DNA of 64,000 bases from Trichosphaerium sp. ATCC 40318 (lineage: Eukaryota > Protista > Tubulinea). Made by a program: the position numbers and the translations under genes. The notes under the pieces are model-generated. The model saw only the letters and a list, made by a program, of their open reading frames with translations. It had not been told where the DNA came from and ran no database searches. Each line of letters begins with the position of its first letter. Positions within the stretch are counted from its first letter, which is position 1. Where the stretch lies: assembly GCA_038496445.1 (NCBI GenBank), contig JALMLS010000076.1, forward strand, positions 186,001 through 250,000, in the 5' to 3' direction. Shown here in pieces: positions 1 through 61,608 of this stretch.

Positions 1-307
1 CACCAGAAAGAAGGGAAAGATCTTTGTCTGTTGCTTCAGGGAAGGCCCACAAAGATATGATGGTGTTTTTGAGAAGAGGACTTCCTGAAAGACGAGAGCA
101 ATCTGAACTTGATTTAACCTTTATTGTTCCATAGCCAACGTGGTGGTGTATGATGTCTGATAATCGTTTACAGCTTTGAGAAACGGCAAATCGATTCTTA
201 ACGGCCACAAACTGAAGTAAATGGGCGATTATCTCTGAAGGGAAGTCTAAAATCGATGTATCGCTCGATCTGTCCTTAAATAAAGCACGTGATAGCTGCC
301 GATCCAT
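1..307 (-). CDS. F-box + LRR family protein, 5' part (runs off window start)
   Basis: Manual translation from ATG 307: MDRQLSRALFKDRSSDTSILDFPSEIIAHLLQFVAVKNRFAVSQSCKRLSDIIHHHVGY...TDKDLSLLSG. It has the same F-box (SILDxPxEI...RFA..C.RL..IIH..IGY) and first LRR as the genes at 29956 and 59968. Not in the ORF track. Confidence 0.85.
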   Translation of the reverse strand, partial: MDRQLSRALFKDRSSDTSILDFPSEIIAHLLQFVAVKNRFAVSQSCKRLSDIIHHHVGYGTIKVKSSSDCSRLSGSPLLKNTIISLWAFPEATDKDLSLLSG

Positions 308-715
308 AAGAACAATCACTAGATATTAGGCGCTGCGCTTACTTGAAGTTAAGGGCGTCTTCGTGTAAACGTTATGGGAAACAACACGTTTTGTGTTTAA
401 GGCTGTTCCTTAATCTGTTGTTGTTAAGTTTCAATGTAAAAGTCAGTAACCAACCAGTTTCAGACTCAAGAAAAGTGATAAGCTGGTACAAGACCCAGAA
501 AAGATATCAACAAACGATTAAAAAAACAAGTCAGCTAGTTATGGAAGTCTATAAACCTGGTTCTATTTACAGACTAGAAAAATACAACTTTATAAACCAA
601 TACTCGCGGCAGTAAAGGGGATACAAACGAAAGTTAAGTCCATCAACAAAACCAGAAAAAACCTGTTCGTTTTTGTCCAACAGCTCCATATCGGTCACAC
701 GTCAAACTATTAGGA

Positions 716-2727
716 ATGAACATGTTGCTTTGCGTTTTATTCGCGGTTATATGTACGTAAAAGCGGTTTAGAGAGTATTAGCTTAAAGAACAGATCTAGT
801 GGCCCCTGCGTGCTCTATAATCAGTGTGACGCATACCAATGGCACTGAGACGTTCTACGACTCATCGTCTCTTCCGTACGGAGGTCGAGTCTTACTTTTT
901 TTTAAAATCTTCTTTTGACAGTTACTCTGGCATTCCAAATCCAAAGGCATCAATATCTGGAGTGCTAGGCACAGAAACGGAGTATTCTGGCTTAGTAGCG
1001 CTCATTACAGAAGAAGAATACAGGCTAAGAACAGGAAGCGCAGAGAAGGCAATATTGTGCGTATGCTTACTGTAAAAAGAGACTAAAAACAAAGCAAGGA
1101 AGTACCAAGATAGAGGCGCTGTTGCTGTTATTCTGCAATCTGAAAAGGACGCGAAGCCAGGGTTCGGATACTACATTACTGATGGGATTGCATCAGATGA
1201 CGATGATATTAAAATTATATGCGTTGACATTCGTTATGAAGACTTTATTACTCTTCAACAGCTTGCCAGAGATAACATTACTATGAATATTACTATAATA
1301 CCAGAACAAAACCCTTGGGTACACAAAACCGTTGATCTGCATTTTTCTTCCTTTTTTTGGCTATTCACTTGAGTCTAGCGACATGTCTATTTTTTTGTTT
1401 TATGCAAGTAATACTTGTAAACAATTAGGGGCGCTTCTTGGTGTTTAGCAGTTTGATGTAAATGAAACTAATGCAAACCTTTTATTGTAGGTTGCTGTAT
1501 ATGGCTCAATCGCTTTTAATGTTCTATTTCAAGGGACTATGCTTCTCTTTGTCGTTTTTAATATCAGCTTATGTTTACTACGCTTACTGAACGGTTATCT
1601 AAGTAAAAAACTGTGGGTATTTCGTGTACCAACAGTAATACTCACGATAGAGTTGATTTCTAATTTACGTACGTTTTCTTTTTTCCTTGTTTTTACTTGA
1701 TTATACTGACGTTGCGTTCAAGTACGTCTTGTTTATGCGATAGACCCTATGTCTAGTCATAGGCTTTACTCATTCAAGATGGCAGATGTACTCGCGACTG
1801 TAACTTCTCCGTTTACTCTAGCCTCCTTTTTACTTCTCACACTTCATTGGTACGTTAAAATGTGAACTTGCAAGCTAGTCCGTAATGGTTTTGTCTTTTA
1901 CTAATTTCCTCTACGCGCGTAGGCATGCTTTGCTACATGCAAAAAATATTCAACTCAATAGCTTTATACCTAAGCTTCGTATTTATTTCATAGCATTTGT
2001 GATCTTTTCTTTTGGTTATGAGCTTATATTTGATGTACTTAAAATAGTATTAACAGGAGGCTTCTCTACAACCCTCCTTATTACCCAAGCAATGTTTTAT
2101 GTCATAAGCTTTGCTGTAATAGCAGTTTTATACTCTGTAACCGGATACAGAGTATTGAAAAAAATTGCAAGACTGAAGCGTCTAGCGTCCGTTAAACCGA
2201 AATCTCTATCACCTATAAGAGGCGTACGTTGTAAAATCAATAGTAGGATTTTCGTGCTAAAGCTCTTGTTTCAGGTTACTATTCGCGCTATTGGAGGTGG
2301 TCTATGCTTAGTAGGTTATATACTCTTCTCAATGTCCACAGCAAGCAGCCTTTTTTTGATTCCTGCTGCAACATCCGTAATCATCTACACTATCTATTTC
2401 TTTCAAAATCTGGCTTCTGCGCTTATGATACTCAATTTCTTCGCAAACTCAAAGTCCATCAATAGCACTAGTGCGAATGTCGCCAAATCAAAGGGAACAT
2501 ACGCAAGCGGGAGAGTTGCAATGTCACAAATAGACATTGTAACCATGAAGAAAGGTGATTCTACTGGGATTGACACCCCATCTACAAGCAGTTCACCACC
2601 ACAAACGCCAAAGGAGCTTGAAGTAGTTGTCGATGAAGAAGACGCGAAAAATGCACCAAAAAAAAAACGGAAAAAGACGCGGCGTCCGAAGGAACAACGC
2701 GCTGTAGAAGTTGATAATGTACATTAA
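716..2727 (+). CDS. Signal peptide + PA (protease-associated)-like domain + multi-pass (~7TM) membrane protein, multi-exon
   Basis: Spliced: MNMLLCVLFAVILAPACS...KYQDRGAVAVILQS...PEQNPW, then hydrophobic helices (...LLLTLHW|HALL...) and a Ser/Lys-rich tail. GTACGT/GTGCGT-AG introns keep the frame. Confidence 0.75.
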
Positions 2728-2922
2728 CGTTCGTTTTGGGCTTGCAGTACAATAAACTTGATCTGTACTAAATCAATCGTGTTATTTATATTACCAATGT
2801 GCTCGGTACGTTATACTCTAAAGCGTATCAGGTAAAAGACGCCAATTGGATGCGCTCTCCCTCCTGACTTAATGTAGTTTTGAATTTGTGAAAGGGTTTT
2901 CAGGCTTGGGCGCCATATAGAG

Positions 2923-5996: not shown

Positions 5997-6515
5997 AAAA
6001 TAAAGAAAGAAAATTAAAAAAAAAAAGAAACAACCAACAAGAACATTATTTTTTCAAAGACCTCACGCCTCCTAGTTTTTATTTTTAAAGAAAATATTCG
6101 ATATGGTAATAAGAGTTGAATAATCTAGGCTGTTTAATGAATGCAGTTTCTTATAGTGCTACCAACTAGTTTTTGACTGGAGAGACAAAGTCGTCAGACT
6201 TCTTCGACGGTGAAAATATAGGTCACAAGAAAGTGAGAGACTTTGTACCTCTCTATCGTTGCAACAAGAGCTACCCAATAACAAGGTATCGTAATCTCAA
6301 CCTCCCCGCTTAAGCTCCTCCATCTCCTAACTTGCGAGTCAGAGGTCTGCCTCTTGGCGGCTAAAGGCCATTACATAACGCATATGTTGATTTTTATCCC
6401 TAGCTGATGTATTTTTTTCTTCCCATAAGAACAATCTTTAGTCATAACGTGTCAACGTAGTCATAAACAGCTTTGCGAGTTATCTAAGCTGTCTTTGTGG
6501 TTGCATTGCATATAC

Positions 6516-6596
6516 GCCGATTTATCATGTATGTATGTAACAGATGAGGGTTTGAAGGCCTTGGCAGGTGTACAATCTAACAAACTTAGCAACAAT
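6516..6596 (+). pseudogene. Isolated LRR relic of the F-box-LRR family
   Basis: Translates ADLSCMYVTDEGLKALAGVQS, matching the TDEGxKALAGVH consensus. No F-box or further repeats nearby. Confidence 0.7.
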
Positions 6597-6834
6597 CAAA
6601 AATGTGAGGTGAACTTATTTTACAGACATCACGTGATGTGATCGGGGAAAAAAAAGTTCGCAAAGTAGTTTATTCAATCACCAACAAACCAATTCCACAT
6701 TCTAGTGTTACAAAGAAGATAATAAGCCTGTAGCTTAGTGGAAACCAATATCATTAATTTAAATATAGTCTAATTTGTTCTTTATTATCTTGCCCATTAT
6801 CTAAAGCTCTGGTTAGGAGTATTTAAAGTGAGCA

Positions 6835-8548: not shown

Positions 8549-11319
8549 CTAGCATTGTGGTATGAACCATGTTACTTCCAGGACAGAACACAGAACTTTT
8601 TGCTGGATGTCTTGTCTCAGAAGGGTTGTCAAGAACTGAAGCTTTAGACTTATCAAGTATGATGAACACATTCACTTAAAATACATATGCAGCTTTACAG
8701 TTATAAAATATAGCAGCGAATGGCTAAATTGTACTTGCTGAAAAAAAAACAGGCTGTAAAACTTACGAAAATACAAAGATGTTGCGCAATTATTGGCATG
8801 GTCATCCAGAATTTCATATAAATTTAGCATAAGACCATTAACTTGTTCTAAACAAGTATTACAATACTATCAAGGGCGCTCTGGGAGGAAAGACGTTCAG
8901 TCTTTGGTGGCTCTGGTGTAGCCGCGCGAGCTGATTTATTCTACCAAGTCAATAGTGTATGTAGTGATAAGTTATTGCTTAATTTTACCATCACATGGCA
9001 GATTAAATATCAAAGTAGGATGTTCAAAAATAAGATGTTTTAGGCAGGAACAACTCATCTGGTATGTTCAAAAAATCCTCTTGGTATACGTCTTCACTGA
9101 CAGCACCTCCCACATCCTTCACTTGATCAAAATCTTCATCTTGCATTTGAAATAGCTTCTCTAAACTGTTTTTATCATACTGCAATCCATGGAAATCAGC
9201 TGTATCCATCAACGACCTAAAATCCAAATGTCAAAATTGTTATTCCTCACTTACCTCTTTTTTTTTTCTCGTCATGTTTGTAAAATTATGAGAAATAATG
9301 TACAAACCTCAATAATCTCCTACAAGGCTCTCCAGGAAATTCATTGAACATTTTCACCATCACCTAAAAAAGAAGGGCCAAGTAAGTTTCAACAAATGTA
9401 AGTCAAAATTTGGAACAGTAAATCTATTTACCTCTTTCACTAGTTGTACATCTCCTCCATGTATTGCAATCAACCCAATATCATGCGTAAGATACAAGTG
9501 TTTAGGGCTTCTTGCTGGATACACACAGTAATCCTTGAATAGATGCCTTGCACGCTTAAAAAAAATGAAAAAAAAAATTGATGTAAAAGAGAAAAACATA
9601 ATGTTGCCTGCCATACCTTTACTGCTTCATTGACTTGGCCTCCTGCAAAGTATACAATAGCATATATAATAGCACTACTAGTTCTAAAACTTGTCCATAA
9701 CTCAGGGTGTGTACTTTGTTGAACACTTGATATTAGATCCTTCATTACAGCTAGGTCATAAAGAAACTGTGCGAATTCATCTTGTGACTTGAAAAAAAAA
9801 AAAAATCAACCTAATTTCTTTGAAAGGCAAAAAAACATTTGACAATGTACAATCTTGCTCAGGCGGAACCCATTTTCAGTTTGAACAGAAATTGTCATCC
9901 AAATCTAAACAACACAACAAGTTAGGTCGCTTAGGTTAATGGATATTCCTACCTTGCCTAAAGAGCACCACATAAGCTGCAGCTTAAGGGGCATAGATGC
10001 CTTTATTGGATTTGCAAAAACAGATGCTAGTTCATCTCTAAACAACGACAGCTTCTGCAGCTCCTTCTCCCTAAGCATTCAATTTATCAATATCTTTTTT
10101 CCTTGGTGATAGAATAGCTTACCTGTTTGTGAAGATATGATGTGTGAATAGCCTACATCGTCGTTCAAGAGTATGCAAATAGTCAAGTGATTTATACAAG
10201 GGATCTTTCACGAGTTCACAAAGCATGTCTAGTATTAGTGTCACATGTTAAAGAACGCTTATTAGCAAAAACTACAGCCTTGCAAGTTGACATACTATAT
10301 CCTTTCTTATTGTAGTAGGAAATACTGTCCGCTTCAAAGAATCCGCACCCTCTGCCCAAAAGAACTAGGCCAGCTTTCAACATGGTTAGCAGGGCCAGAT
10401 GTTCAAAATGAGTTACAAACAGCTTACTGGCAACGCTGGGATGTGATGTGTCTTCTAAGTTTATAGACAATTGTTCACATGCTTCTAACAACTTCATTGA
10501 CGCTTCTACATGTGTATCTTGAGCGCCAATTGCAAGTATACTAAGAACTTCAAAGACTTGAAGTTCACCCGACAAAACTTGAGTTTGTTAAGAAGGAGAT
10601 ACAAAATTAAACCATGCCGTACTACTGCAAGTTTCAAACAGCTCATTAACAACCTGTGAGTTCCAGTGACGTACAGGTACAGCCTAGATTGTATCAGAAT
10701 GGAGACGGGCTGTTTATGAGCCGTGAATTTCGTAGGCAGATGACCGGTAATCCATAGGATTTTACTTGAGATTTTGGACTTCTGCCACGAAACTTACGGC
10801 CGTTGCGTACATAACGTGGATAATATTTTCTCTTATAAGACTCTAACCATATTGTAACACAAGCTGTAACGTTTAAATCAGCGCACAGTTGTAGAAATCT
10901 TGTCTTATAGACACGTGTCAGATTAAAAATAAAAAAAAAAAGTAAGAAAAAAAAAAACCCCAACAACAAAATGAATACCTGCTTTCTCTGCGTGGTCTTA
11001 CTATACATTCTACGCCAATGAGCGATTTCACGTTCTTGCAAAGCCAATTGCTCTTTTAATTTCTTTATCGTTAATGGACTCCCTTTTGGCTTGTTATTTT
11101 ACTACAACGGAGAACAAGTCACGGACCCTTATTTGGGCCCCTTTTCTTTTGTATTGGGTAAACACAATCTATGTTTTTTTGTAAACAACGTGTACATGGC
11201 GAATCTTCACTGCACTTCGCGTGACTCTTCCTACAAGCAATACAAGCGCGGCTGCTCCGTGTACGTTTTCCAGAAGCTGTACTAACGCGTCGTTTTTTAG
11301 GCGGTGGCGGTATGGACAT
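8549..11319 (-). CDS. Zn(II)2Cys6 (GAL4-type) binuclear cluster transcription factor, multi-exon
   Basis: RACIACRKSHAKCSEDSPCTRCLQKNIDCVY..KKRGP fits CX2CX6CX5CX2CX6C, followed by a coiled coil (IKKLKEQLALQERE). Downstream minus-strand exons run to a stop near 8549. The 3' extent is tentative. Confidence 0.75.
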
Positions 11320-11758
11320 ACTAGAGACTGCGAAGGAGCGCTCAAATTGGTTTCCGCGATGCTGTCTGTTGTACAAATGGCAATTCACGAAAAAAAAGAC
11401 TTGAGTTGACTTAAAAAGGACTTTTTAAAACTAATTAGTTAAATTTAACTAATTTTGGCCAAGGATTTATCATCAGTTTGTAACAGGGTTTAAGGGGCTG
11501 GATGGTGTAATTTTCCTTTTTTACGCACGTGACATACGGTTGTAGCAATATGTAAGCGCCTTGGGCTGTATTCAAGAAATTTGTTCCGTCGTTCTATCTG
11601 CAGTACGTCCCCTTCGCTTTCTACCAGCTACAGGGTCTACTATCAGCAATGTGTGATTGTAAAATCATCTGACTATTATTTTTTTTTTGTTGGGAAGTTT
11701 GTTAATCTTCTGTTCCTTATGATTGTTCGAAAGAACTTTATGCTATGGATTGGTAGTA

Positions 11759-14880: not shown

Positions 14881-15900
14881 GTGTCTTGGATCCGGTTGAG
14901 GTTTATAAACTGTAAAATATGTTGCGACCTTATTGATGGACATAACAAGCGCCTTGAGGAGCTACATGGCGATACAAAGTGTCTCAGAAAAATTTGTGAT
15001 TTAATATACTATGATCGCAGGTTTGCAACGTCAACTGTGATGGCTAAAACATTTTATTACCACGCATACGGGTACTGTGCTAACTTGTCCGATACCTCGT
15101 TCGTTGGGTAATCATATCATACTTCAAGAAGGTACTTCACTTTTTGCAGACCAAAGCCCAAAGACGCCAATCAATTTCTTCGACAGAATACTGAACAGAC
15201 AGGAGTTTTCACAGATAGAGCGAGTATACACTCAAGCATATTATCGAACACGTGACTTCATCCAAACGAGATCTTGTTACTAGCGTTCGGGATAATTGTT
15301 TTCCCCCTTCAGACAAGTCATTCGAGATTTATGGTGACAATATCTAGTTTGTCCTGAATTGAAAATACATTAGCAGAACCCTATCTGAAACATTTTGTAT
15401 CGCGTGATACACAGCAGTCACATGAATTTCTTGCGTGTTTGAAGAATAGTATTGACAAACTGCGCTTAATAAACAAAAGCAAACACAACAACAATCACTT
15501 CTTAACAAGTAAGTAACACTACATACTTTACAACTAACTTGCATGAGTAGAAAATGTCAGACTAGAACCTACAGTTATAGAAGCCCTAGAGAAATGAAAA
15601 CCAGCCACCTAGTTGTTGAAGAATCTGTCTAAAACTGACCAGGAATGGAAAAAAATTGAAACTGAAATTGTAAAAGTTAAAGCAGCCGAAAGTCTGAAGC
15701 CAAAAGAAGTAATAAAGCAAGCTGCAAACTTGCGCAGCTGGGTGCTTCTTGAATTAGTTCTTGGTATCCTACTAAAGGCAATATCAACGAAAAAAAAACA
15801 ACAACTATGCTATTTTTTTCGTTGATATTGCATTAAAGATGGAGGTGAATAGATTGGTGATTATACTGGCAATGTATTGCGTACAATACAATGAGCTCTG
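14881..15900 (+). pseudogene. Decayed coding relic, possibly SET-domain related
   Basis: Broken ORFs with stops and frameshifts. 15832-15880 reads IKDGGE*IGDYTGNVL, resembling the SET motif I..GE.I.EY.G.V. Confidence 0.25.
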
Positions 15901-16142: not shown

Positions 16143-17281
16143 TTAAATCCAATAAAACAAAGAAAGAAACGTTGGTATATCCATTGTCTCAGGGTTGAAA
16201 GGTACAACTGGTTTTTCAGGGTAAGGTATAATATGCAGTTGTTCATAGCTTGAGCGCATATGTACACTTAACCTGAAAGTATCTTTGAACTTCTGTACAA
16301 GACCTACAAGGTACATCCTCTGAAACACTCTATTCTTGAATATGCTAATAACAGCAAGGTTCCTTCCATTGTCGGTGTTCTTTGGCTGTGATGTGAACCT
16401 CTTTTCAAAGTAACGCGTGATGTATTTGTTACTTCCTGCTGCTTTTTCTAAAATGTCTTGTTTGTTATCTTCTAGCCAGTTATACCACCCTTGAGCGTTA
16501 TCAAAATCAATATATACACCAAGGACATCATTATCATTTATACGCTTATCTCTTCTATCTATACTTTTATATCCAGGACTTGATACCAGCGCAGTCAAAT
16601 GCCATCCACTTTCATTGCTGTTTTCGAAGAAAAAAATTAACGTCATCTCAAGTGTATAAAAAATGGGTGATTATTTGTACCTATTGTATAGATTGCCATC
16701 GTTCAAACAATAGCTCCAATCGCAATCTCCTGTGCAAGTAACACCGAAATCTATCAAAGAGAAACACTCACTTCGTGCGAAATTTTCTTTAAACCCTAGA
16801 CTCCAATCATCACGTGCTTCAAAGTAATATTGACCAACCTATGCAACTATAAACAAGACAAACCTATAAAAAAACTATTGGTTTGGGCACGTGTATTTCG
16901 TACAGAAGGGTAGAATGTACGAGAAAAAAAAGATGCAGTTCTAAAAGTTGCAGCCTCTTTGCTTGATAATGTCAAGTTTCTCCGCTCTTCGAACTTGTAC
17001 AAGTCGCAACTGAGAAATAAATCCTTCCAAATAGCTTTATTATCACTCTCCTTTTGATATACGCTTAGTAAAGCACTTGGGAAGTATGTGGAGAGCATAT
17101 TTTTCCATAATACATTATCTAGCGTGAACTCCTCCCATACTCTACAAACTGAAGCGTTTTGAAGCGTTTGCTTCGCACCACAGTACATAAATATTTTTGT
17201 GAGCAACCCTGAGTTTATTACGCATTCTAAACTACTCAGCGATATAATTTCGTTCTTTTTCTTTTGATTAAAACCAGACAT
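16143..17281 (-). CDS. F-box protein with SPRY/B30.2-like C-terminal region
   Basis: LLTKIFMYCGAKQTLQNASVCRVWEEFTLDNVLWK is an F-box. YYFEA, WSYCLNDGNLY and DVLGVYIDFD resemble SPRY strands. Two introns. Confidence 0.7.
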
Positions 17282-17609
17282 GCTGTCGCTTCCCTTTCTT
17301 TAAATTGCAAGAAAAATTGCCAGTATTGGACCACTTGCACTTGCTGTGCAATTTAAAAGATGTAAGGCTGTATTTCGCATACAGCTTGGTTTTGCTTCGA
17401 AGCAACAATCTGATGTTGCACAGTACAGGTATTAGAAGTTGTTCATAGATCTCTTAGCAAGTACTATAACTCAAAATGTACAAGCATTTAGTACTTGTTG
17501 TCTAGCTGTAACCTAGAGTAACAAGTGTCATATAATTCTCTAAGAGAATTGAACAATACATTTTTTATTTTTGTTTTGAAAAAGTTTTATTTATTGGAGT
17601 GCTTTTTCA

Positions 17610-20974: not shown

Positions 20975-21121
20975 TGATACTGGTTGCGGTAAATTCTGAG
21001 CTACCGTCGGTATACATGACTTGACTTAGTGTGGTTAAGTTGGATTAGAACGCGCTAGTTTTAGCAAGCATCAAATTGCTCTGATAATAGCAATGGCGTA
21101 ATGTAACAACCACCAATAACT

Positions 21122-21262
21122 TTGTTTAAGGACAAATAGAGTGATACATCGATTTTAGACTTCCCTTCAGAGATAATCGCTCATTTACTTACTGCAGTTT
21201 GTGGCCGTTGAGAATCGATGCTGTTTCTCAAAGCTGTAAACGATTATCAGACATCGCACCAC
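21122..21262 (+). pseudogene. Frameshifted copy of the F-box segment of the gene at 1-307
   Basis: Near-identical to the reverse complement of ~148-287 (gatacatcgattttagacttcccttcagagataatcgc...tttctcaaagctgtaaacgattatcagacatc), with small indels and an in-frame TAG. Confidence 0.85.
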
Positions 21263-21709
21263 GTGATTGTGTGAATGTTGCAAAAGAAATTAAAAGCAAA
21301 GTGATTGGTTGGCACTAGCTTATAACGACTTGTTGACCTCACCCAAAACGTGCTCAACAACACTTTAATACAATGTTTGGCTTCCATTAAGCGCCTGTAG
21401 ACTTAGCTCATACATACAGTGAAATAAATCATGTTTTTTTCTGTTTGTCTTATCAGTTACATCTCAACAGTGTTCAAAGGTTGCAAACTGAAAACGGCAA
21501 AAGAAACAAACGTTGTATCAATAGAATGGTTTGCCATTGAATGAGTGTAGGTACATTAGGAGTATAGCTTATATACGGTATTGTTTATATTGCTGGTTTT
21601 GTACAATGTAAGGTTTACCTTCAACTACTTTATTTTTGAAATGACATGTGTTGGTACCATTACCATCGTGCAAATAGGAAGAATTTGCATTTGTTTTATA
21701 CTTCCTTTA

Positions 21710-22765
21710 TTATTCTTCACACCACTCATTTTCTTTTCGTACTTGTGCTTCTTCCTCTGGTGTAAAATCACTTTCTATGTTAAACTGTTTTCTTATTTCT
21801 GCAGGTGTTTTTCCTCTTATTCTTCTAGCAATAGATCTACAAGATATATCGATCAAGGGCTAAATAAAAGAGTATATTAGAAAGTTGTTTTACTGTTGTT
21901 CAGAAAACACGTGTGGTCAAAAACAGGCAAAAAACAAAACCATTGAAAGAGGAAAAATCTGAGTCAGATTTTAGGGTTTTTTCTCATCAATAATATGGCA
22001 TTCCTTCTCTTCCCTTAAGGTGAAGGATATTGTATAATAGCTTAATTCGTTGACAGGTTGGTACATTTTAGAATACAGCCACATTATACCTTCTGAGAGG
22101 AATACGAAAAAAATGGTTTTGAAGAAGAAAAAAAAATTGATTTGTTTGATTAGTATCGTACTCTAATACCAAGATAATAACTAGCCATTATAGTGCCAAA
22201 TATATCTGATTGTTCAAAGTTATCAAAGTCTTCATCTGTCAATCCTGGTTTACCACCTTGAATATCAATACAATATTTGACAACCTAAATAAAAATAAAA
22301 GGTTAAAAAAACCTCCACAAAAGTGGGAGTGCACTCCCTTAGTATAGTTCGACCAACATAATTTTAACAACCGATTCTATGGCGAGGTGGTTTGGGTATT
22401 CAAAAATTATAGCTTCAGCCATTTAAGGTTATGATGCACGTACAAGGTCAACAATGTGATCTTCAGCTTCAACACAAACTGTAATATCATTTCCCAAAGT
22501 ACAGCAAGATGATTGAACACGCTCAACAAGTGTACGCATGGCATGTGTTATTGAGTTAACCGATGGAAATATGCCAACAGATGTATCATTATAACTGCTT
22601 GGTTTGAATAGATCGCTTATTAGCGCAGAAACTGATATAGCTCCATACTCAACAGGGAATTTTTTTCCAGTTCTGTAACGTGTTAGATTCCAGAAAAAAA
22701 ACAGAATGTCAAATTGTTGTGACGTACTGTGATTGGATCCAAACAATTGTTGTATCATCTACCAT
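21710..22765 (-). CDS. Divergent Skp1-like protein (SCF adaptor), 4 exons
   Basis: [13 protein letters not shown]|[21 protein letters not shown]...IVDL|VVKYC...[19 protein letters not shown]|[49 protein letters not shown]. The C-terminus is an unmistakable Skp1 F-box-binding region. Confidence 0.92.
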
Positions 22766-22834
22766 GCTAAGTGAAGCCTATAGGGATGAGATGAAAGTAT
22801 AGCACAAACCTCAAATAACGTGGATTTGAATGTT

Positions 22835-24008
22835 TTAGTGAATTAGTTTTAGACTTGTATTTAATCTAATTCTACTTGTAGTCAACACATACTTGAGTTT
22901 GTACAAGATATATTGGTCAAGTACATTGTATAATTGTGGGTTGCAATTAAAAAAAAATCACGTGATCTTATTTTACGTACTGGTTCTTTTGGTCTACTTT
23001 TAGCAAGTGCGTCAAGATTTAGTTCACGTTTTATAGCAGTGTTGACATCAATGTTAAATACTGCCTTCCACATACTTTTTACCTCTCCACTATCTAATGG
23101 TGTGACACCTTCAGCTACTGCACCCGACTACAAAAAAAATAAACGGCAAAAACCCACGTGCAAGTGAAGAATTATCCAAAAAAAAGATCAAAACCTAATT
23201 TCACCTTCATTACTATCCAATTATAGATCATCAACAGTAAATCATCCCAAAGCATCTCTAAACGACAATACATACCAACAATTATATCATTACCATTATC
23301 AGAGTCTTTTAAAAGTACAGCATCCTTAGCAGCGCTCTATTAAAGTGAGTTAACCCAAACCAGAATAAAATTAAAAAAAAAGCTGAAAAGGGTAGTTTCG
23401 CATTACGTTTGTAAAATGCTGCATTGCTTCAATGCACAGGTCTCCAAGGGTTTTAGAAAGCGTCACACGATCTGATTTACCAAGATGCTTCATCAGGACC
23501 TGATTTAGCCATACAAGAGACGACGTTGGCACTTTTATTTGAGAAACAACGCAATCTGCAATAAAGCACAACGATACTTTGACTAATCGGCTATTCAAGA
23601 ACTCTGACTCTTTTCTATGCCACTTTTGGTTAAAACAAAAACGGTTAGTAACCGTCTTGGTATTTTAAACTCAACAGCGCTGTAGTCGCGTATTTGGAGT
23701 ATCGTGGTAGCTAAACGTACGTTTTTTGCGTAAAATACTCTTGTGGCTTCCTTCCATGATTTGAACTCTTTTAACTGCTCGACACTATAGCACAGAAGGT
23801 AACGTACGCCTGTCGGTGCTATTTCACATTAACTGAAATCAAATCCAGGATATTTTAACGTACTTTCGCGTAGAACGATCTGTTTCCAGATGTAATCCGA
23901 ATCGCATATACTTTTCTTTCTTTTACATGTTCTTCCGAATCTTCCTAATGTGCGAATGTCAAGTCGAGCTACTACAGCGTAAAGAGCATCTTCGTTGCTT
24001 ATATCCAT
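22835..24008 (-). CDS. F-box protein with unknown C-terminal domain, multi-exon
   Basis: Exon 1 reads MDISNEDALYAVVARLDIRTLGRFGRTCKRKKSICDSDYIWKQIVLRE, an F-box. The last exon boundary is uncertain (~22835-22875). Confidence 0.75.
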
Positions 24009-24423
24009 CAGTTCAGGTTATTATAAATGGAGTAAAGAAAACTCGAGATTTTTTATTAAGAGGACTTCTACAACTAACAACAAAAGGCGTCCTTATACGG
24101 TTACTTGCAAGAGATGGGTGCTTATACAAGAGGTATATGTTAATAAGTGCCACGTGTATTCTATGTCTACTGTTGAGTGAGTAGCGTGTTTTATTGTAAC
24201 TTTACAGCAAGACCTGTGGTTTAGAGCTGTGGCAAAGAATTAGATTCCAAAATAAGTACTTTGTTTGTTAGATGCAAACATAACAAAGAAAAATCAACCA
24301 CGTGATAAAATATGAAAAGAACCCCAAAGCTTGATTATTTGTGGTTGTTTTAAAAGCATGCTTCCGGCACTCTACAACAAAAGGAACTAACCAATTGTAA
24401 TATAGGCTTTCTTTATTCTTGTG

Positions 24424-25562
24424 TCAATATACAATCTTTTCAGTTGCACCTAATAAATGCAGCAAACTACTCTGATGTAGCGGCCTTATAGTTGTGAATA
24501 CCTTAGATAAACACTGCAAAAAGCGGGGCTCGATCAACTCCGGTGTAGATGCTAACTAGGCTTCACTATAACATAATAAGCAACTCAACCATACCTTTTG
24601 TTCAAAGGTGCAAAAGCTAAAACTCACCCTCACCCACTCTTTGTTCTTTTTAAAACCATTTAGTTCCCAGTGCGCCTAAATAAACGTGTTACACAATGTC
24701 GGGTGTTGGCGACACTAAATGGGCCTCAAAATAGAATGTGCGGAGTATTGAACATGTAGGTACCATTTAATGAACTATAATAACATTGAAAAGTATCCCC
24801 TGTTCACAAATACCCCTTGTATCACCTTCAACGTACATACACAATCCTCATCGCTGTCATAATCACCGTTTTCATCTTCCACCATAGTAGGATCGTCGCT
24901 GCATTCTAGTTTAATCTCCTCGCCTTCTGTTGCCAGTTTTTCTAAACTGATTAGTTTTTTCGCTGCCAATTGCACTATCAAAATTAGTGTTTACCTTCTG
25001 TTTCTCTCAATTCCTGTTTTCCTTTACTGGGGCTCTTTGAGATAAGCGCAAGGTATTCTATAATCGTTTTGGTATCATTTAAGAACTCCGAACGTCCCTT
25101 GTAGTCTCTAAAAAAAGACTTGAATTTAATTTTGACAATCGGGATTGTTTTCTTTTATATTGTGGGTTACTTACTTTACATTGTCCAATAGCCACACCAA
25201 ATCCTCTAATGCCATACCCTTGGCACCACTGTCTGACGGATTCGCTAAAGTGCTTGATCTCTTCTGGTACTCCTTCCAAATGCCTTGTTCTTTTGCTTTT
25301 TGACACACAACAGATATTTGACCATCACAGATGTGAAAGAGCATACGTTTGATGTCACCAACTGTCATTGGGCTAGTCTTTCGCCCAGAAACAGTGTCGG
25401 TTTCGACCTCCTTAACTGTGTTGCTGTTCAGAACGTTGTTTCTACTTTGGTTGATTCCCATGGTTGCTAAAAATTGGTTGTTGAGTTGTTGTTGAGTTGA
25501 TTTGTATTTTATTGTTGTTGCAACAACTTACTTAATGTCTGTGTGTTGTTAAATGATGTCAT
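24424..25562 (-). CDS. Hypothetical multi-exon protein
   Basis: Exon-like ORFs 25171-25461 and 24775-24981 are linked by GT-AG introns. Acidic stretch EDENGDYDSDED. No recognisable family. Confidence 0.5.
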
Positions 25563-25905
25563 AAGTGCCTTGCTTCTAGGATCACGTAATATCCCTTTAA
25601 TTTCAAATAATCGCAAACTCTTTGATGCTCTACACTCTAAACTCTTACAATGGTCTGTTTGTTACCTTACATTCGTTGTAGTTTTCTACGTTGGTTTTGG
25701 GATTTTGTTCCAATGATTTTTTAAACAGCTATTTCGGTTGAAGATTGGTTTATTATTGTATGCTTAAAAACTAGGATTATGCTCGCAAAAACACTTTAAT
25801 TGGTAGTTTGCAGTAAATCACGTGGTATTTACAAACTCGTATATTCACTTAATTAGCTTTCGTGCTTCACCGTGACTCACGGGTCTTATCCTATATAGTC
25901 TATTT

Positions 25906-26606: not shown

Positions 26607-27474
<868 letters not shown>

Positions 27475-29955: not shown

Positions 29956-31671
29956 TTAGGGTTTTGTTTGTAACGATGGATAGAAAGGACTTTCATATGT
30001 AATCGAAGTGTTGTAAGTGTAAATTGCGTGAGCACTAGGAAGAGCCTTGATACACTCATCTGTAATATCTTTGCAATTAGAAAGATGAATGATATGTACT
30101 CCAGCAAGTGCTTTAACACCTTCATCTGTTATCTGGCACCCTTGAAGCTGAATGACATGAACACCAGCAAGTGCCTTGATACCCACATCTGTTACGCTTG
30201 TATAACCAAGATCAATAGTATGGACACCAGCAAGAGCTTTTATCCCCTCATCTGTTATGCCTGCACATTTTGCGAGACCAACAGTATGTACTCCAGCAAG
30301 CGCTTTTATCCCTTCATCTGTGATGTCATTACAAATAGTAAGGTAAATGGAATGTACTCCAGCAAGCGCTCTCAACCCTTCATCTGTTATGTTTGTATAA
30401 CAGAGCCTAATGGTGTGAACCCCGGCAAGTGATTTTATCCCTTCATCTCTTATGTGTTGACAATCGTCAAGAGAAATTGTATGTACTCCAGTAAGCGCCT
30501 TTAAGCTTTCATCTGTTATATTTGTTTTGTCGAGATCAATATGATGAACTCCAGCAAGAGCTTTTACCCCTTCATCTGTTATTCTCATACAACCACTCAA
30601 TGAAATGTGATAAACTCCAGATAAAGCGATTATCCCTTTATCTGTAATTTGTTCACATGATCTCGTGGAAATTGTATGTACTCCAGCAAGTGCTTGAATG
30701 CCTTCATCAGTGATGTTTGGACAAAAACAGATATCAATGGTATGTACCCCAGCAAGTGCTTTAATACCTTCATCTGTGATTGTACCATAATAAGAAAGGT
30801 TAATATCATGAACTCCAGCAAGTGCTATGACGCCTTCATCTGTTATACTTAGTCCTCTAGCATCAATAGTATGAACACCAGAAAGAGCTTTTATCCCTTT
30901 ATCTGTAATTTTTCTACAAGCTAAAAGACTAATAGTATGTACTCCAGCAAGTGCTTGAACACCTTTATCTGTTATGGACGAACATCTATCCAGAAAAATT
31001 GTATGAACGCCAGCAAGTGCACATAACCCTACATCTGTTATGAGTGTATCACCAAGATTAATATGATGAACACCAGCAAGAGCCTTGAAGCCTTCATCTG
31101 TTATCTTTGAACATGCTAAGATATCAATAGTATGTACTCCAGCAAGTGCTTTAATACCTTCATCTGTGATTGTACCATAATAAGAAAGTTTAATATCATG
31201 AACTCCAGCAAGTGCTTTGACGCCTTCATCTGTTATACTTAGTCCTCTAGCATCTATAGTATGAACACCAGAAAGAGCTTTTATCCCTTCATCTGTTATG
31301 CCATTGTTCCAGCGAAGATCAATATCACGAACACCAGCAAATGTTTTGACAATATCATCAGGTTCAGATTTGACAACAATTTTGATTTTCGTATGTTGGA
31401 GAGTACTTGAATGTTGTAAAACTGCTGAGGCTTGTGAGGCATTTGTAATATAAACGCTATGGTATCCGATAATATCGTGAATGATAGAAGCAAGGCGATG
31501 ACATGTTTGACAAGCTGCAAATCGTGCTTTTGTCGTTTTAAGTAAAATATGTGCTAAAATCTCTGTTGGCAGGTCTAGAATGCTTTTTTCAGCACTAGCA
31601 TAATTAGCATACACGAATACGCTAATTTACACGTGCGTTTGCTCTTCGGTGTTTACAACCTTTTTTAACAT
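29956..31671 (-). CDS. F-box + ~20 leucine-rich repeats (GVHxIxLxxxxITDEGIKALA)
   Basis: The ORF 29956-31614 lacks an in-frame ATG. ATG 31671 (MLKKVVNTEEQT) plus a short phase-2 intron ending at ~31595 restores the frame to SILDLPTEILAHIL. Confidence 0.92.
30729..31296. repeat. Internal ~178-bp direct duplication (30729-30906 = 31119-31296) within the LRR array
   Basis: The two blocks are offset by 390 bp and differ at 6 positions by manual comparison. Confidence 0.9.
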
Positions 31672-36000: not shown

Positions 36001-36300
36001 GACAATACGCTCGCTCACTTCTAATACAACTCCTAGGTGACAGCAAATACATTCTCAGGTATTTTTGGAACAGAACTTGAATTTTTTGTTCAAAATGAAG
36101 AGAATTTTGCTACCTGTTTGAACGACTATGTCCCTCCATCCGTACCTACACCTGGACCTACACAAGTAACACAACCAACAACCTCACAATTAGAGCCTAC
36201 TTCGAATGAACCTGTATCACCAACTCAAGAGTCATCTGCAATATACATTACGACAAAACTACTTCTTGTATTTTGTATGTACATTCTCATTGTACTTTAA
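33066..36300 (+). CDS. Large secreted/cell-surface protein, beta-rich, with Pro/Thr/Ser stalk and probable GPI signal
   Basis: Signal peptide MTRSTLFVITILCVLVG, many exons. C-terminus VPTPGPTQVTQPTTSQLEPTS...ESSAIYITTKLLLVFCMYILIVL*. Confidence 0.75.
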
Positions 36301-43636: not shown

Positions 43637-45106
43637 CTATTGGTAATAATTTTTTTTGTAGGTGTATATAAATATGGGTTCTACTGTATTGCAATCGTCT
43701 AGAAAGGAGATACATAACTTTTTTCGTTCTTCAAAGTAAGTACGTAGAAGGAAATTATTCTTAAAGAAACCATGAAAGTTCAGTGATCCATCTTTATTCC
43801 ACTTTCTGTAATGACCTTCTTTTTTACCTTTTTTGTACAGACACCGTTTAGCAATCCTACCATTACTATACCAAACCTCATACGAACCTTGGTTTTTATC
43901 ATCGAGTACATTCTTACTCTCCATAATGCAACCATTATCATACCATCTTTTTTGTTTTCCTTTTTTTTTATTGACAACATACTCACACTCTTTTATCAAA
44001 ACACCAGATTCCCATTTACAATACATCCCATTCTTGTTTCCATTAAGATACTCAACATCATATTCTATATTTCCATCATCATCCCATTGTCTTAGACGAC
44101 CATGATTTTTCCCATCATGATATTCAATATCACACTTAATTTTTCCATTTTCAAACCACTCTCTCTCACGACCATGCTTTTTACCATAACTATATTCAAT
44201 ATTATACTCTATATTTCCATTATCATACCACTTTCTATAACTACCATGCTTTACTCCACTCACCATATCAATGTCTTTAAACTTTTTTCCATTTTTAAAC
44301 AACTTTAGTCTTTTCCCATTCTCTTTACCATCAGTATAAAAAGTCAATATTCTAATTTCACCACTACCATAATACTCATTTTCTTGTCCTTGCTTAAGGT
44401 CATCTTCATAGCAACACTCATAGATAAGTATACCTCTCATTGTTTTTGTATGTCTACCTTCTTTTTTACCTTCAACAAAAAACAAAACTTGTTCACATTG
44501 GTTCCAATCTGAACTCATATGACGCCCATGACGTTCTCCATTCTTCCAATGACTCTCTTCATAAAGAAATCCAGATTTATACCATCGTTTTTGTGAACCA
44601 TGTCTTTCTCCGTCTTCGTTATAATGAACTTCTGCAGAAAGTTGACCATTTGTGAACCAAGTCCTATGCACCCCAATCGGAACACCTTTATTGTATTGTC
44701 CCTGCTCACGTCGTTGACCATCCATTTCATACAATGTAACTAGACCATCAAGCTTTCCTTGGTGATAAGCTCCTTCTTCTCTCAAATTACCTGCAGCATA
44801 CCAAATTGTATGCTCTCCATGTTTTATTCCTTCCTTGAACAAAGTACGGCTGTAAAGACGTCCATTATCATGCCATACACGTGACATACCATCCAGAATA
44901 CCGTTTTTGAAGCTTATAGCTTTCCAAAGAGTGTTTCGAGAACGTGGATAGTTCTTGATGAACGTCCCATGTTTTTCGAGGCTGTTATTAAACCTAGACG
45001 TCAAAGCCGCTTGGTAGTTTAATAAAGGCCACTTGACATACGCACTATGGTCTAGACTTCTAATTAAGTACTGTATCTCGACAGGAATACCAAGTAGCGT
45101 ATTCAT
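43637..45106 (-). CDS. Intronless MORN-variant (YwqK/antitoxin-like) repeat protein with F-box-like N-terminus
   Basis: Roughly 15 repeats of W/Y-x-x-N-G...Y..G...G. N-terminus MNTLLGIPVEIQYLIRSLD resembles the F-box start L..LP.EI...I. Confidence 0.85.
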   Translation of the reverse strand: MNTLLGIPVEIQYLIRSLDHSAYVKWPLLNYQAALTSRFNNSLEKHGTFIKNYPRSRNTLWKAISFKNGILDGMSRVWHDNGRLYSRTLFKEGIKHGEHTIWYAAGNLREEGAYHQGKLDGLVTLYEMDGQRREQGQYNKGVPIGVHRTWFTNGQLSAEVHYNEDGERHGSQKRWYKSGFLYEESHWKNGERHGRHMSSDWNQCEQVLFFVEGKKEGRHTKTMRGILIYECCYEDDLKQGQENEYYGSGEIRILTFYTDGKENGKRLKLFKNGKKFKDIDMVSGVKHGSYRKWYDNGNIEYNIEYSYGKKHGREREWFENGKIKCDIEYHDGKNHGRLRQWDDDGNIEYDVEYLNGNKNGMYCKWESGVLIKECEYVVNKKKGKQKRWYDNGCIMESKNVLDDKNQGSYEVWYSNGRIAKRCLYKKGKKEGHYRKWNKDGSLNFHGFFKNNFLLRTYFEERKKLCISFLDDCNTVEPIFIYTYKKNYYQ

Positions 45107-45550
45107 AGTGTGGTCTGAGCGTGTTATGGTGTTGTTTTCAAGAAAAAAAAGAGAAATCTTCATTGAACTTGTTGAGAAAAAGGCCTTAAACTTAACTGAA
45201 CTTAAAGGTAGGTGGAGATGGAAATAACACTAGTATTATGGAGGTAGCTCCATTATATAGATAATCTAAACTCTTTGACACATAGTGGCAAGGATCGGTA
45301 ACCCACTGTGGCAACTGAGTTGACAATCTTGAAACTTATAATTTTGTACTCAACCCAAAAATTGGTGTAAGACTTTCTTTTATTTCTTCACAATAGGGAT
45401 AGAAACCAAATAAAAAGTGTACTTATAAGTTGGTAAACTTTGTTTGTACTTTTACAGAATCAAAAAGGCCTTGAGGGCTAAAGCTGAAGAACAAAAAAAT
45501 GCCAAAAAAATGTGTTGGTTCAAAAACTGTTCGTTCATTTTCTTCTCGAT

Positions 45551-53717: not shown

Positions 53718-53809
53718 TTTGTCAGAGCAAGTCATCAACGGCTCAAAATAAAACCACAAGAACTGTTTTGTGTCTGTCAGTTAAAGCAGAATAAAAACAA
53801 ACACTAATA

Positions 53810-55223: not shown

Positions 55224-55249
55224 TTTCATTTGGATTTCAATACAACCCT

Positions 55250-55920: not shown

Positions 55921-57310
55921 TTTTACAGGTACCACAATAAATAGCTACTGCCACGGAAGCAATTTAAAAAGAGGATGTATGCTCTATTCACCAGCAATGA
56001 AGAAGATATCCTGACATGCAAGTGTTGGGAGCACTGTGTTAGTAGAATTTCCGTTTAGGATTTCTGCGTATGACCACTACATCTATCGGAGCTTTTTTGT
56101 TAAAGTCGGGTAAAAATGTGAGATTTTGTTGGTGTTGTATCATGGCACCACATGCTTTTTTTAAGTTCTACATGCTCTCAACGGCTTTGAAATTAGTTTG
56201 TGTTCGATACCATAGAAACCTAGTATCACGCAAAAAAAATGCAAGAATTGAATAATTTGAGTTTTACCCTATTTTTCTTGCAGGTTGTAGCCGGTCCCAA
56301 CTTAAACGGCTAAACGGCTATAGCCATTTGGCGACCACCTCTATGTACATACAAAGTACACAAAGAAGTGAAATGTAGTTGCAGATGGATTACCCTACTC
56401 GCAGGTCATTTCAATTCAAGTCGATTTTATTTGTAAATGTTGGTTGTGTACTTGTGGTCCAGGTGCAGGTACAGATGGAGGGACGTAAACGCTCGAACAG
56501 CTAGTAGGTGCAAAACACGCTCAAAAGAGCTTTAAAGTATCGTGAGTCTAAGAGGTAGACGTCATGGCTTCTTGCTAATGCATTAGAGTCCACAAAAGAA
56601 AGGCAAACACTATTTTGAATTAAAAGAGCGCCAAAAAGCCGACAGTGGCATCACAGTTACGCGAATATCTCTAATATTGCATACACGATCGTTTGAGAGC
56701 AAAAGTCAACAGAAAATCGGTAACGGTACGATCACGTTTTTTTGAAACCGAAAAGGCAAGTTACAGGTTCAAACCGTCACCAACGCTATGATACATTACG
56801 TTATAAAATCGAGGCATGTTTTGAGCGACAAGCGCTTAAGGGAAGCTACAACAGAAAGATCACCCTTTTTTTGGATCAAAGCAACACGGAAACGTATTAC
56901 TTTACATTAATATCATACCACCAATAAATAAAGGTTGATTACGCAAATTCTCGGTTCTTTGGATTCTTATTGGCTTAATATCAGTTTTAAATATAGATGA
57001 GTATCAAAATACGCGTGTAAGATACCACGCAGGAACGCTGAAACCGGTGTAAGTTGTATTTAAGTATTTTTCGAATTTCACTTTTTTTCACACTTGTTTC
57101 TCAACATTGCAATCCCGATTTACTTCATAACTCCATATCTTAAAACCCAACATCAAAATCCGTACATCTGCTATCGATTGGCCCTTATATGCTTAGATTA
57201 ACATGTACAACACACTGGACTGGTTTTCGCAAAAACTGTAGGAAACCACAATTTTTTTGCAACAAGAAATTACTTGGTTAAAAGGAAAATCGATTTTTTA
57301 TCTAGTGGAA

Positions 57311-58423: not shown

Positions 58424-59353
58424 ATGGAAGCACAACCAAACAATGCAAAGCGATGCTTTTCAGATGACTGTACAGTCATAGATTCTATCCTAGAACATAT
58501 CAACAGCGATATGTTCAATGCCATCGTCAGTATGGTGCTAATAGCAGAAGCACCAGCTGTAACGCAATTAAAAGCTACAAACAAACGCATTTATCAACGC
58601 ATAGCATCTATACAGTCTTTTACGCCTGATAAACTAAAAGAAACCGCGTTTCTTCAAATACTCAACCCTGAGCGTCAAACATACCTAAAACTACTCAAAT
58701 CTATACAACAAGGCAAATACAGAGTATTTTGTGTTGATCAAGACAAAACAAGAATTATCTCGTTTACTTCACTCTATGAATCTCTATCAACACCTAAATT
58801 ACATGGTATGGGTATTAGACCAATGGCTGATGTTATTGAATACTCAAATATTAACGGAGCAATTCACATGAGTTGGCCTCAAGGTATTTTTTGTAAAGAC
58901 TGTATTTCTGTTCCAAGGCCTCATTTTGGAGATGGTTACCGTACCATTGCATCCGTGACTACACGTGATAAGAACGTTTGTGGTAGACATACTAATCACA
59001 AGGAAGCTTTTATTCCTCTTGTATGTGTGACATGTAGCTTGGGGAATGCTATTTTTGAATGGGAAGGTAAGATATATTGTTCAAGATGTATGATAAAAAG
59101 TCCTGTTCGTTCTTTGAAGTATATGATTCATCATCGGGTTGTAGAAACTACAAAGTTTAAATCAAACTCCCCTGGGGTCTATAGTATTGCCAAGGATCAC
59201 TCAGTGCTTGTTGTGGAACTATTGGATGATGATATGAGGACAAAACTTGAAGATCCTAGCAGTTCTGCTTTTATTATTCAACAACTAAAAGAAAGCTTCT
59301 TTTATCAAGATCCTTTTGATAGTAGTTGCCTTTGGCTTCTTGCCTGGGATTAA
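58424..59353 (+). CDS. Intronless 309-aa hypothetical protein, degenerate F-box-like N-terminus, Cys-rich (CxxC) middle
   Basis: SILEHINSDMFNAIVSMV...VTQLKATNKRIYQRI, then CKDC, CGRH, CVTC, CSRC. Confidence 0.65.
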   Translation: MEAQPNNAKRCFSDDCTVIDSILEHINSDMFNAIVSMVLIAEAPAVTQLKATNKRIYQRIASIQSFTPDKLKETAFLQILNPERQTYLKLLKSIQQGKYRVFCVDQDKTRIISFTSLYESLSTPKLHGMGIRPMADVIEYSNINGAIHMSWPQGIFCKDCISVPRPHFGDGYRTIASVTTRDKNVCGRHTNHKEAFIPLVCVTCSLGNAIFEWEGKIYCSRCMIKSPVRSLKYMIHHRVVETTKFKSNSPGVYSIAKDHSVLVVELLDDDMRTKLEDPSSSAFIIQQLKESFFYQDPFDSSCLWLLAWD

Positions 59354-59392
59354 ACGTTCCTGATTTTTCTGAGTACAGTAAAAAGTACTTCT

Positions 59393-59732
59393 TCAATCAA
59401 TAGCAATGAAGCTTTTTTTGTTTCCACCAGCAAATTCTCTTACAATATCATACTTAATATCACCTTTTAATATGACACTTGTGTTTCCAAGAATACCACC
59501 ATGTTGTACAATTCTTTTTGCTTGTTCAGGTGTCACTACAATTTCATGGTACCCAATGACTTCGTGAATCATTAAAGAGAGTAAGTGACAAGCTGCAAAT
59601 CTTGTTGTAGTTGTTTGTCGTAGAACATGCTCTAATATCTCAGGTGGAAACTTTAGAAATGTCACCTTAGCGCTGTCACGTAGACATCACATGTATCCGA
59701 GCGGCAAGTCGATACTGTGGGCACTGTTTTAT
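59393..59732 (-). pseudogene. Truncated F-box-LRR paralogue (F-box + linker, no LRR array)
   Basis: FLKFPPEILEHVLRQTTTTRFAACHLL...IGYHEI...REFAG, then diverges. It has a 9-nt deletion relative to the sister copy at 61321. Confidence 0.8.
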
Positions 59733-59967
59733 GGAAAACTGTCACAGAACTAGAGCCAAAAGTGGCTCTAAAGTTCGCGAAACATGGTCCTGGAAAGACA
59801 TCCACGTTACCTCTAATGGTGTTGGTTTTATTCTTTTTCTTTGTTGACGCGCGACAGTTACCACGATTCATTTGGACTACCCTTTTCACCACGTGACTTC
59901 AGACAAACGTCGTGTATTTTCTTCATAACGCAGGCTCACCACAAGAAGAACGTGTACTCACAACCAT

Positions 59968-61137
59968 ATGGCCAATCGTTCAGTGACAGTTGATCGGTAC
60001 TACAACAATGTTGAATAGTGTTGTTTATTCTAAATAAATGCTTTCAGTACCACCGCTGCCAAGAGGAGTATTTTGGAGCTACCTACAGAGATTTTATCGA
60101 AAATTTTAAGTTTTACAACAACGTCGCGATTTGCTGCTTGTCAAACATGTCGTTTCTTCTCTTCTATCATTCATGACATTATTGGATACTACCATATTAA
60201 AATAAGAACAGAAAATCAAGTAAGAGCTGTTGTGAAGCATAGTGGTATTCTTCGAAACACAACAATCAGAGTAACCAACCATTCTCGTTACTTTTCTCCT
60301 GGCATCTTAAAACTATTTGCTGGTGTTCATTCAATCGATCTTTATACCTTTCTTGTAACAGATGAAGATGTGAAAGCGCTTTCTGGAGTTCATACCATAA
60401 ATCTGTCTCGTACACCAATAACAGATGAAGGCGTAAGAGCACTTGCTGGCGTTCATACAATTGACCTTACTACAACTAATGTAACAGATAAAGGCATAAA
60501 GGCACTTGCTGGCGTTCACAGTATACGTCTTAATGATACTCAGGTGACAGATGAGGGTATAAAAGCACTAGCTGGTGTTCATTATATTCAACTTAGCACC
60601 ACTCAGGTAACAGATGAAGGCGTAAAAGCGCTTGCTGGCGTTCACACTATACATATTCGCGAAACTAAAGTAACTGATGAGGGTATTAAAGCGCTTGCTG
60701 GTGTCCATAAGATAAACCTTGAAGCCACTGCTGTAACAGATGAAGGTATAAAAGCACTTGCTGGCGTTCATACTATACTTCTTATTGGTACTAAAGTGAC
60801 AGATGAAGGCATAAAAGCACTAGCCGGTGTTCACACTATTAACCTCAGTGGCACTTCAGTAACTGATGAAGGCATAAAAGCACTAGCTGGTGTTCACATT
60901 ATTAACCTTGGTGGCACTTTAGTAACAGATGAAGGAATCAAAGCACTTGCTGGCGTTCATACTATTGACCTTTCATTAACTTCAGTCACAAATGAGGGTA
61001 TAAAAGCACTAAAAGGTGTTCACAGAATTTCCGTTTTTGGCACATCAGTAACAGATGAAGGTGTTAAAGCTCTAACTGGTTCATACCCTACATGGAGAAA
61101 TATTAATGGATTTCTGAAACTGCCTATGAGAATGTAA
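59968..61137 (+). CDS. F-box + 12 LRRs of 21 aa (GVHxIxLxxTxVTDEGIKALA)
   Basis: ATG 59968 (MANRSVTVDR), phase-2 intron 59997-60047, then TTAAKRSILELPTEILSKIL. The array has a 63-bp period. Confidence 0.92.
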
Positions 61138-61320
61138 ATTAAATTGATGTACAGCGGTACTTTGACAATATTATGGTTTGTTTATGCTAGCTAAAACGCA
61201 GAACAGTTTCTGAGTTAGTTTCATCTGTTCAATCAGTTGTTTCGAACACTTTAAGCCAAGTTGATTAAGAAGGTGATTGTCTGTAAAAATTTTACGAAAG
61301 GTCATGTGATTTCTTTTCAA

Positions 61321-61608
61321 ATAAAACACAGGGCCACAGTATCAACTTGCTGCACGGAACTACAAGTGATGTCTACATAAGAATATTCTAATATTGCTTT
61401 GCAGTTAACGTGTGACATGACAGTGCTAAACCGACATTTCTAGAGTTGCCACTTGAGATATTAGCGCATATTCTACGCCAAACAACCACAACAAGATTTG
61501 CAGCTTGTCATACGTGTCACCTACTCTCTTCAATGATTCACGAAGTCATTGGGTACCATGAAATTGTAGTGACACCTGAACAAGCAAAAAGAGTTGTACA
61601 ACATGGTG
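61321..61608 (+). pseudogene. Truncated F-box-LRR paralogue, inverted sister of 59497-59732
   Basis: FLELPLEILAHILRQTTTTRFAACHTCHLLSSMIHEVIGYHEIVVTPEQAKRVVQHG, then unrelated sequence. Upstream non-coding DNA is also shared with the 59.5-59.7 kb copy. Confidence 0.8.

Follow-up and report, generated by a model that had tools for sequence, protein, structure and literature searches.

A spliced F-box/Skp1 fusion gene and a duplicating and decaying family of F-box-LRR genes in the amoeba Trichosphaerium

Does a group of F-box genes around a Skp1 gene serve an amoeba as a defence repertoire, or does it hold something else? The question is raised by 64,000 nucleotides (nt) of Trichosphaerium sp. 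ATCC 40318 (assembly GCA_038496445.1, contig JALMLS010000076.1, positions 186,001 to 250,000), which we call the window and in which all coordinates below are counted. A reading of this DNA made from the letters alone (the sequence-only reading) had listed seven pieces of one family of F-box proteins with leucine-rich repeats (LRRs), four other F-box or F-box-like genes and a non-canonical Skp1. It had proposed a diversifying repertoire of receptors for Skp1-Cul1-F-box (SCF) ubiquitin ligases. The window is intron-rich eukaryotic DNA with 36.9% GC; the published Trichosphaerium draft has 37.69% GC and a mean intron of 75 bp (PMC10521059). We show here that the supposed Skp1 gene and one of the F-box genes are the two ends of a single spliced gene, and we discuss what its product might do.

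The evidence for one gene comes from contigs of four sequencing runs that were aligned to positions 21000-26999. Two of these runs, from two studies, yielded contigs of the fusion gene. Neither is recorded with certainty as RNA, the type being absent or a guess; since the introns are precisely removed and a loose end at 24024 resembles a cDNA adaptor, we take both to be cDNA. From 24024 down to 21567 on the minus strand, the contigs of these two runs reveal eight joints, all of them GT-AG, and the transcript extends to 24024 at one end and to at least 21567 at the other. The gene (21710..24008, minus strand) consists of an F-box, an orphan middle region and a Skp1 domain. Its nine coding exons (23864-24008, 23721-23818, 23407-23622, 23205-23336, 22981-23127, 22728-22777, 22444-22672, 22162-22284 and 21710-21859) form one open reading frame (ORF) of 429 amino acids (aa), in frame and free of stops. 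The F-box half is joined to the Skp1 half by the GT-AG intron 22778-22980 (minus strand). This joint is present in both runs, where it is crossed by individual contigs 1135 and 1257 nt long, and the body of the intron is covered by no contig of the aligned runs. In both studies the fused form is the only isoform that was assembled, in contigs that may miss rare isoforms and carry no expression level. A search with exon 3 alone led to a complete 429-aa MMETSP protein, P0123, which is identical to the gene model; the independence of this record from the sequencing run of 2015 is uncertain. Thus, both domains that had been read as an F-box gene at 22835 and a Skp1 gene at 21710 are real, while their division into two genes is not.

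How might such a gene have come about? Retention of intron 22778-22980 would end the F-box ORF after 278 aa, and a methionine lies within the Skp1 half at 22765. Together these features suggest an origin by the joining of two neighbouring genes, and the fusion probably arose when the two were spliced together. A more sceptical version of this history is that read-through splicing joined an F-box gene that was dispensable with a Skp1 duplicate already in decay, and that the resulting protein does little or nothing. Halves that could stand alone would suit such an accident, as would the frequent shuffling of F-boxes in this genome and the orphan status of the gene. The model was searched exon by exon, with P0123 as the query for whole-protein searches, and the whole-protein and region searches gave only Skp1-only matches and P0123 itself; the records P0124-P0126 are short repetitive matches. 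However, nine in-frame exons without stops, in the only isoform assembled in two studies, speak against it, as does the restriction of strong conservation to the F-box-binding helices described below. We therefore regard an accidental gene as improbable. The sole metagenome match to exon 7 (bacterial, L002) was rejected as chance, and an Rfam scan of the introns of the Skp1 part found no RNA. Directly upstream of the fusion lies a five-exon spliced transcript (24400-25480, minus strand), seen in one run, whose first exon has no Pfam match.

The Skp1 part (aa 252-429) is conserved asymmetrically: the F-box-binding helices stand at about the canonical level, while the BTB half is eroded and carries an insertion. 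The C-terminal helices (aa 381-429; 21710..21859, minus strand) match Pfam Skp1 (PF01466) with 85.6 bits at a cut-off of 22.3, and show 49-67% identity to eight further Skp1s, whose mean identity to one another is 66%. Identity to the same eight drops to 15-40% over aa 355-380 (mean among those 50%) and to 4-24% over aa 255-310 (mean among those 34%). For the diverged N-terminal half, which in Skp1 is the Cul1-facing BTB domain (22162..22777, minus strand), Pfam gave no BTB/POZ match (PF03931) on the exons or the whole protein. The profile match of this half is weak, 26 of 2000 shuffled sequences scoring as high (2000 shuffles were likewise used for the F-box and cullin-profile scores below), and in the alignment it carries about 30 residues more than other Skp1s. 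Foldseek aligns about 170 columns of the whole-protein model to Skp1 chains, the model itself being poor (predicted local distance difference test, pLDDT, <50). The C-terminal helices of Skp1 form the F-box-binding surface and its PxPN motif contacts Cul1 (PMC1257465). In our alignments the fusion reads IFPS where other Skp1s have PxPN, and SYYLGI where the conserved ANYLDI stands. We infer that the Skp1 helices of the fusion are no longer able to hold Cul1. The proline equivalent to Pro143, which is hydroxylated in Dictyostelium Skp1, is kept (P414). The Skp1 of this locus is not a stand-alone protein of about 160-190 aa but the C-terminal domain of the 429-aa fusion. With its Cul1-binding motif lost as well, it probably does not serve as a free adaptor for a private canonical SCF. 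The idea that the amoeba uses its own Skp1 paralogue here was wrong as it had been put.

The other end of the chain is less regular. The F-box (aa 6-47; 23868..23993, minus strand) scores 28.7 bits as Pfam F-box-like (cut-off 24.3) and 22.7 as Pfam F-box (cut-off 20.5) on exon 1, and lies just under the cut-off when the whole protein is scored. It does not have the usual Leu-Pro start. Between F-box and Skp1, exons 2-5 (22981..23818, minus strand) encode an orphan middle region that is mostly helical (aa about 50-246). Searches of 5.8 billion proteins and of 1.84 billion representatives found no homologue of it, and exon-by-exon searches of Pfam, PDB and Atlas gave nothing. AlphaFold models of the whole fusion and of the middle region are helical in the middle and of low confidence (pLDDT 47-48), and fold searches with them were uninformative. 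By eye, this region was at first likened to cullin repeat 1. Were it a degenerate cullin repeat 1, the chain would unite F-box, cullin cap and Skp1 as a three-part mimic of the SCF head and might act as an inert decoy or inhibitor. Five predicted helices have roughly the right order and length, and in a comparison that drew on 7-9 cullins retrieved from public contigs the pairwise scores against the N-termini of 7 cullins add up to a z of about 2, which helical patterning alone could give. However, the score against a cullin profile lies within that of the shuffles (612 of 2000 score as high), hhalign gives a probability of 0.1%, and there is no Pfam Cullin, PDB or fold match. A cullin-repeat identity is thus not supported and stays a lead, and we hold a mimic of the SCF head to be very unlikely. 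Contigs filed as giant-virus genomes carry intronless Skp1 genes and full-length cullin genes (L004:2563-3150, L005:2560-3147, L012, L015, L024, L025 and L028-L030), and some of these contigs may be host contamination. One cullin ORF occurs both in a contig of a bacterial metagenome-assembled genome (L020) and in the giant-virus one L024; the bacterial record is therefore probably mis-binned.

What could a protein with an F-box at one end and an F-box-binding surface at the other do? Tentatively, we favour an SCF receptor that would dock on Skp1-Cul1 by its F-box and catch other F-box proteins by its Skp1 helices. The N-terminal F-box would bind the presumed canonical Skp1-Cul1 of the cell, and the C-terminal Skp1 helices would take the place of a substrate-binding domain, holding other F-box proteins that are unassembled and whose F-box is exposed. 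These would be brought to the ligase, either to be removed or to serve as an extension arm. The genome has hundreds of F-box genes, among which the fusion might be a device for F-box homeostasis, and foreign F-box effectors could be caught by the same Skp1 surface. If the F-box of the fusion pairs with the Skp1 domain of the same chain, this may give a closed resting state. This proposal draws on the asymmetric conservation: an F-box-binding surface that served only in cis could drift, and that it is still canonical would fit many F-box partners better than a single one. It also fits what is known elsewhere, since excess unbound F-box proteins shield substrates, are harmful and are actively removed in yeast (PMC4675558), and parasites of amoebae carry many F-box proteins (PMC4209131). 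Several points weigh against it. Both structural models are poor. The gene is an orphan, and therefore selection on the fusion itself is not measurable. Because the F-box has no Leu-Pro start, recruitment of Cul1 is not assured. The cis pair of F-box and Skp1 could stay permanently closed, and the middle region of about 200 aa is not accounted for.

In the main rival reading, the fusion would be a self-paired single-chain adaptor whose own F-box sits on its own Skp1 helices, so that a closed module presents the middle region, free of a cullin or on a divergent cullin paralogue. Skp1 complexes outside the SCF exist, CBF3 and RAVE being examples. Fused partners usually interact in cis, the features facing Cul1 appear altered on the F-box and the Skp1 part alike, and an engineered Skp1-TIR1 fusion is functional in S. 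pombe (PMC8229956). However, the F-box-binding helices stay canonical where a one-to-one cis interface could have drifted, and the quality of the AlphaFold model does not suffice to reveal a cis contact. We consider a self-paired adaptor somewhat unlikely. Capture of foreign proteins could also be the purpose of the gene rather than a by-product. The fusion would then be an integrated decoy, in which a Cul1-blind Skp1 bait captures F-box effectors from giant viruses or intracellular bacteria that attempt to hijack host Skp1 and has them ubiquitinated, possibly triggered when a foreign F-box displaces its own from the Skp1 domain. We think this quite unlikely.

Compared with known systems, the receptor that we propose departs from the canonical SCF in distinct ways. 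The fusion shares with it the F-box and the C-terminal F-box-binding helices of Skp1, and the F-box-LRR copies of the window share the FBXL layout. In contrast to the canonical SCF, the fusion has F-box and Skp1 in one chain with an orphan region of about 200 aa between them, and its Skp1 has no Cul1-binding motif and an insertion of about 30 aa. Another likeness is to the engineered Skp1-TIR1 of the S. pombe auxin degron, a functional single chain that likewise unites Skp1 with an F-box protein (PMC8229956). That construct is artificial and of the opposite order, its Skp1 is intact and binds Cul1, and its substrate domain is known, whereas the Trichosphaerium fusion is natural and Cul1-eroded. 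The "Skp1-free" degradation of F-box proteins in yeast addresses the same problem, the disposal of unbound F-box proteins (PMC4675558). It uses Cdc53/Rbx1 without Skp1, while the fusion would use a Skp1-derived catcher, which is a proposal only. In the literature searched, whose coverage left most subscription papers outside, we found engineered Skp1/F-box fusions only and no natural one. As far as these searches reach, a natural single chain of F-box and Skp1 has not been described before.

What, then, of the F-box-LRR family on which the defence idea was built? All seven pieces exist: two are intact, one is cut by the window edge and four are relics. The intact gene at 29956..31671 (minus strand) encodes 560 aa with 20 repeats of 21-22 aa and has a predicted 36-nt intron at 31595-31630; the one at 59968..61137 (plus strand) encodes 373 aa with 12 repeats of 21 aa and has a predicted intron at 59997-60047. 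In each, this single short 5' intron, a prediction from sequence, lies just upstream of the F-box. Both have Pfam F-box-like and LRR_6 matches above cut-off and thus the FBXL-type layout, an F-box followed by tandem LRRs. The LRR array of the 29956 gene contains an internal duplication of a block of two to three repeats (30670-31324, minus strand). The 5' end of a third member (1..307, minus strand) has a Pfam F-box match of 25.7 bits. A frameshifted F-box relic of its subfamily (21120..21255, plus strand) is 91% identical in DNA to 152-285, with indels of +4 and -2, and a weak single-LRR relic was found in six-frame translation (6501..6617, plus strand; best tblastn E 1.5e-4). Two truncated F-box-only stumps sit either side of the 59968 gene: one at 59393..59681 (minus strand), head to head with that gene and with a 9-nt deletion, and one at 61415..61613 (plus strand), 87% identical to the first.

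The family reaches well beyond the window. The closest database proteins to the window copies are paralogues, 30-50% identical, and four of these were traced to one transcriptome sample; the family is therefore larger than the copies seen here and is expressed. Together with the dispersed copies and the frameshifted or truncated relics, this bears out the birth-and-death turnover that had been proposed. Relatives are present in Clydonella and Stygamoeba and in two giant-virus contigs (40-46% identity over the repeats), one of which holds three tandem copies. An unrooted tree of the N-terminal approximately 135 aa has 23 rows, four of them viral, and leaves out P0005, which has no clear F-box, and two relics recognised at the DNA level. 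In it the amoeba and viral rows lie on opposite sides of one branch (support 94/93), which without a root gives no direction of transfer, and the 1-307 copy groups with transcript P0016 (100/97). An assembly contig of 54% GC (L010:1-1670) carries two divergently oriented F-box-LRR members that group with the Clydonella protein. F-box and MORN are the commonest domains among the putative giant-virus transfers of the Trichosphaerium genome (PMC10521059); those genes, scored as viral transfers, have the same domain types as found here, and no Skp1 fusion is described among them. The F-box-LRR expansions of giant viruses and Parachlamydiaceae are alike in domain types and birth-and-death turnover, again with no Skp1 fusion described (PMC4209131).

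Does this family form a repertoire of diversifying intracellular immune receptors, directed at giant viruses or bacteria and with a Skp1 paralogue dedicated to it? The proposal is about the LRR family and has to be judged apart from the function of the fusion gene. Its appeal lies in the rapid birth and death of copies, in a conserved scaffold with variable strand positions, and in the many parasites bearing F-boxes that amoebae encounter (PMC4209131). Among the repeats within the two intact genes, the LRR scaffold is under purifying selection within each array, with ratios of replacement to silent differences (pN/pS) of 0.37 and 0.14. The five variable columns, which are the usual LRR strand positions, give 1.03 and 0.92, with pN and pS both near saturation. 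"Hypervariable" thus applies in the ordinary LRR sense, but there is no excess of replacements, pN being about equal to pS; variation this saturated neither demonstrates nor rules against diversifying selection. Furthermore, giant-virus contigs hold the same architecture, and there it is therefore not host defence. Neither intact window copy is itself among the database proteins searched (best match 49%), and the Skp1 is not a free adaptor. The defence role is not borne out, and an immune repertoire is in our view unlikely. The F-box/Skp1 expansions linked to defence in Caenorhabditis and plants are similar in having a large F-box family with fast turnover. On present evidence, the likeness does not extend to positive selection, induction by infection or an expanded family of free Skp1s. 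We read the F-box-LRR copies of the window as the ordinary product of an SCF-receptor family that duplicates and decays fast and is common to marine amoebae and giant viruses. By itself the family adds little, as it has already been reported and is without an immune signature here.

The remaining F-box claims concern three other genes. An F-box gene unrelated to the LRR family is present at 16143..17281 (minus strand), with a Pfam F-box-like match above cut-off (27.9 bits on 16850-17299); the F-box lies in an upstream exon (16847-17281) and not where it had been placed, and the join to 16143-16646 is putative. The supposed F-box-like gene at 43637..45163 (minus strand) is weakly F-box-like at its head (49 of 2000 shuffles score as high), but its main identity is that of a MORN-variant repeat protein (Pfam MORN_2, E 1e-22). 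At 58424-59353 (plus strand), where an F-box gene had been called, stands a 309-aa single-ORF orphan with several CxxC motifs; Pfam, the shuffle test (411 of 2000 as high) and homologue searches found no F-box, Pfam domain or viral relative. Elsewhere in the window, a single long ORF (27932-28648, plus strand) contains an Ifi-6-16 (IFI6/IFI27-like) domain above cut-off (Pfam 54.6 bits); this family is interferon-induced in animals. By eye, 26582-27400 (plus strand) is a GST-like gene; the RNA contigs aligned there differ at several letters and joints and therefore come from a paralogue. A Zn2Cys6 binuclear cluster domain is found at 11122-11424 (minus strand), an imperfect 60-nt inverted repeat with runs of A and T at 15775-15834, and, at 36110-36180 and 56438-56504, a short coding-like segment rich in Pro and Thr that is present in two inverted copies with 83% identity.

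The fusion of F-box and Skp1 is one small soluble protein, and the idea that it catches F-box proteins is thus open to direct testing. If it is true, the fusion would represent a new control on an oversized F-box repertoire, and it would also be a possible counter to the F-box mimicry of the viruses and bacteria that infect amoebae.

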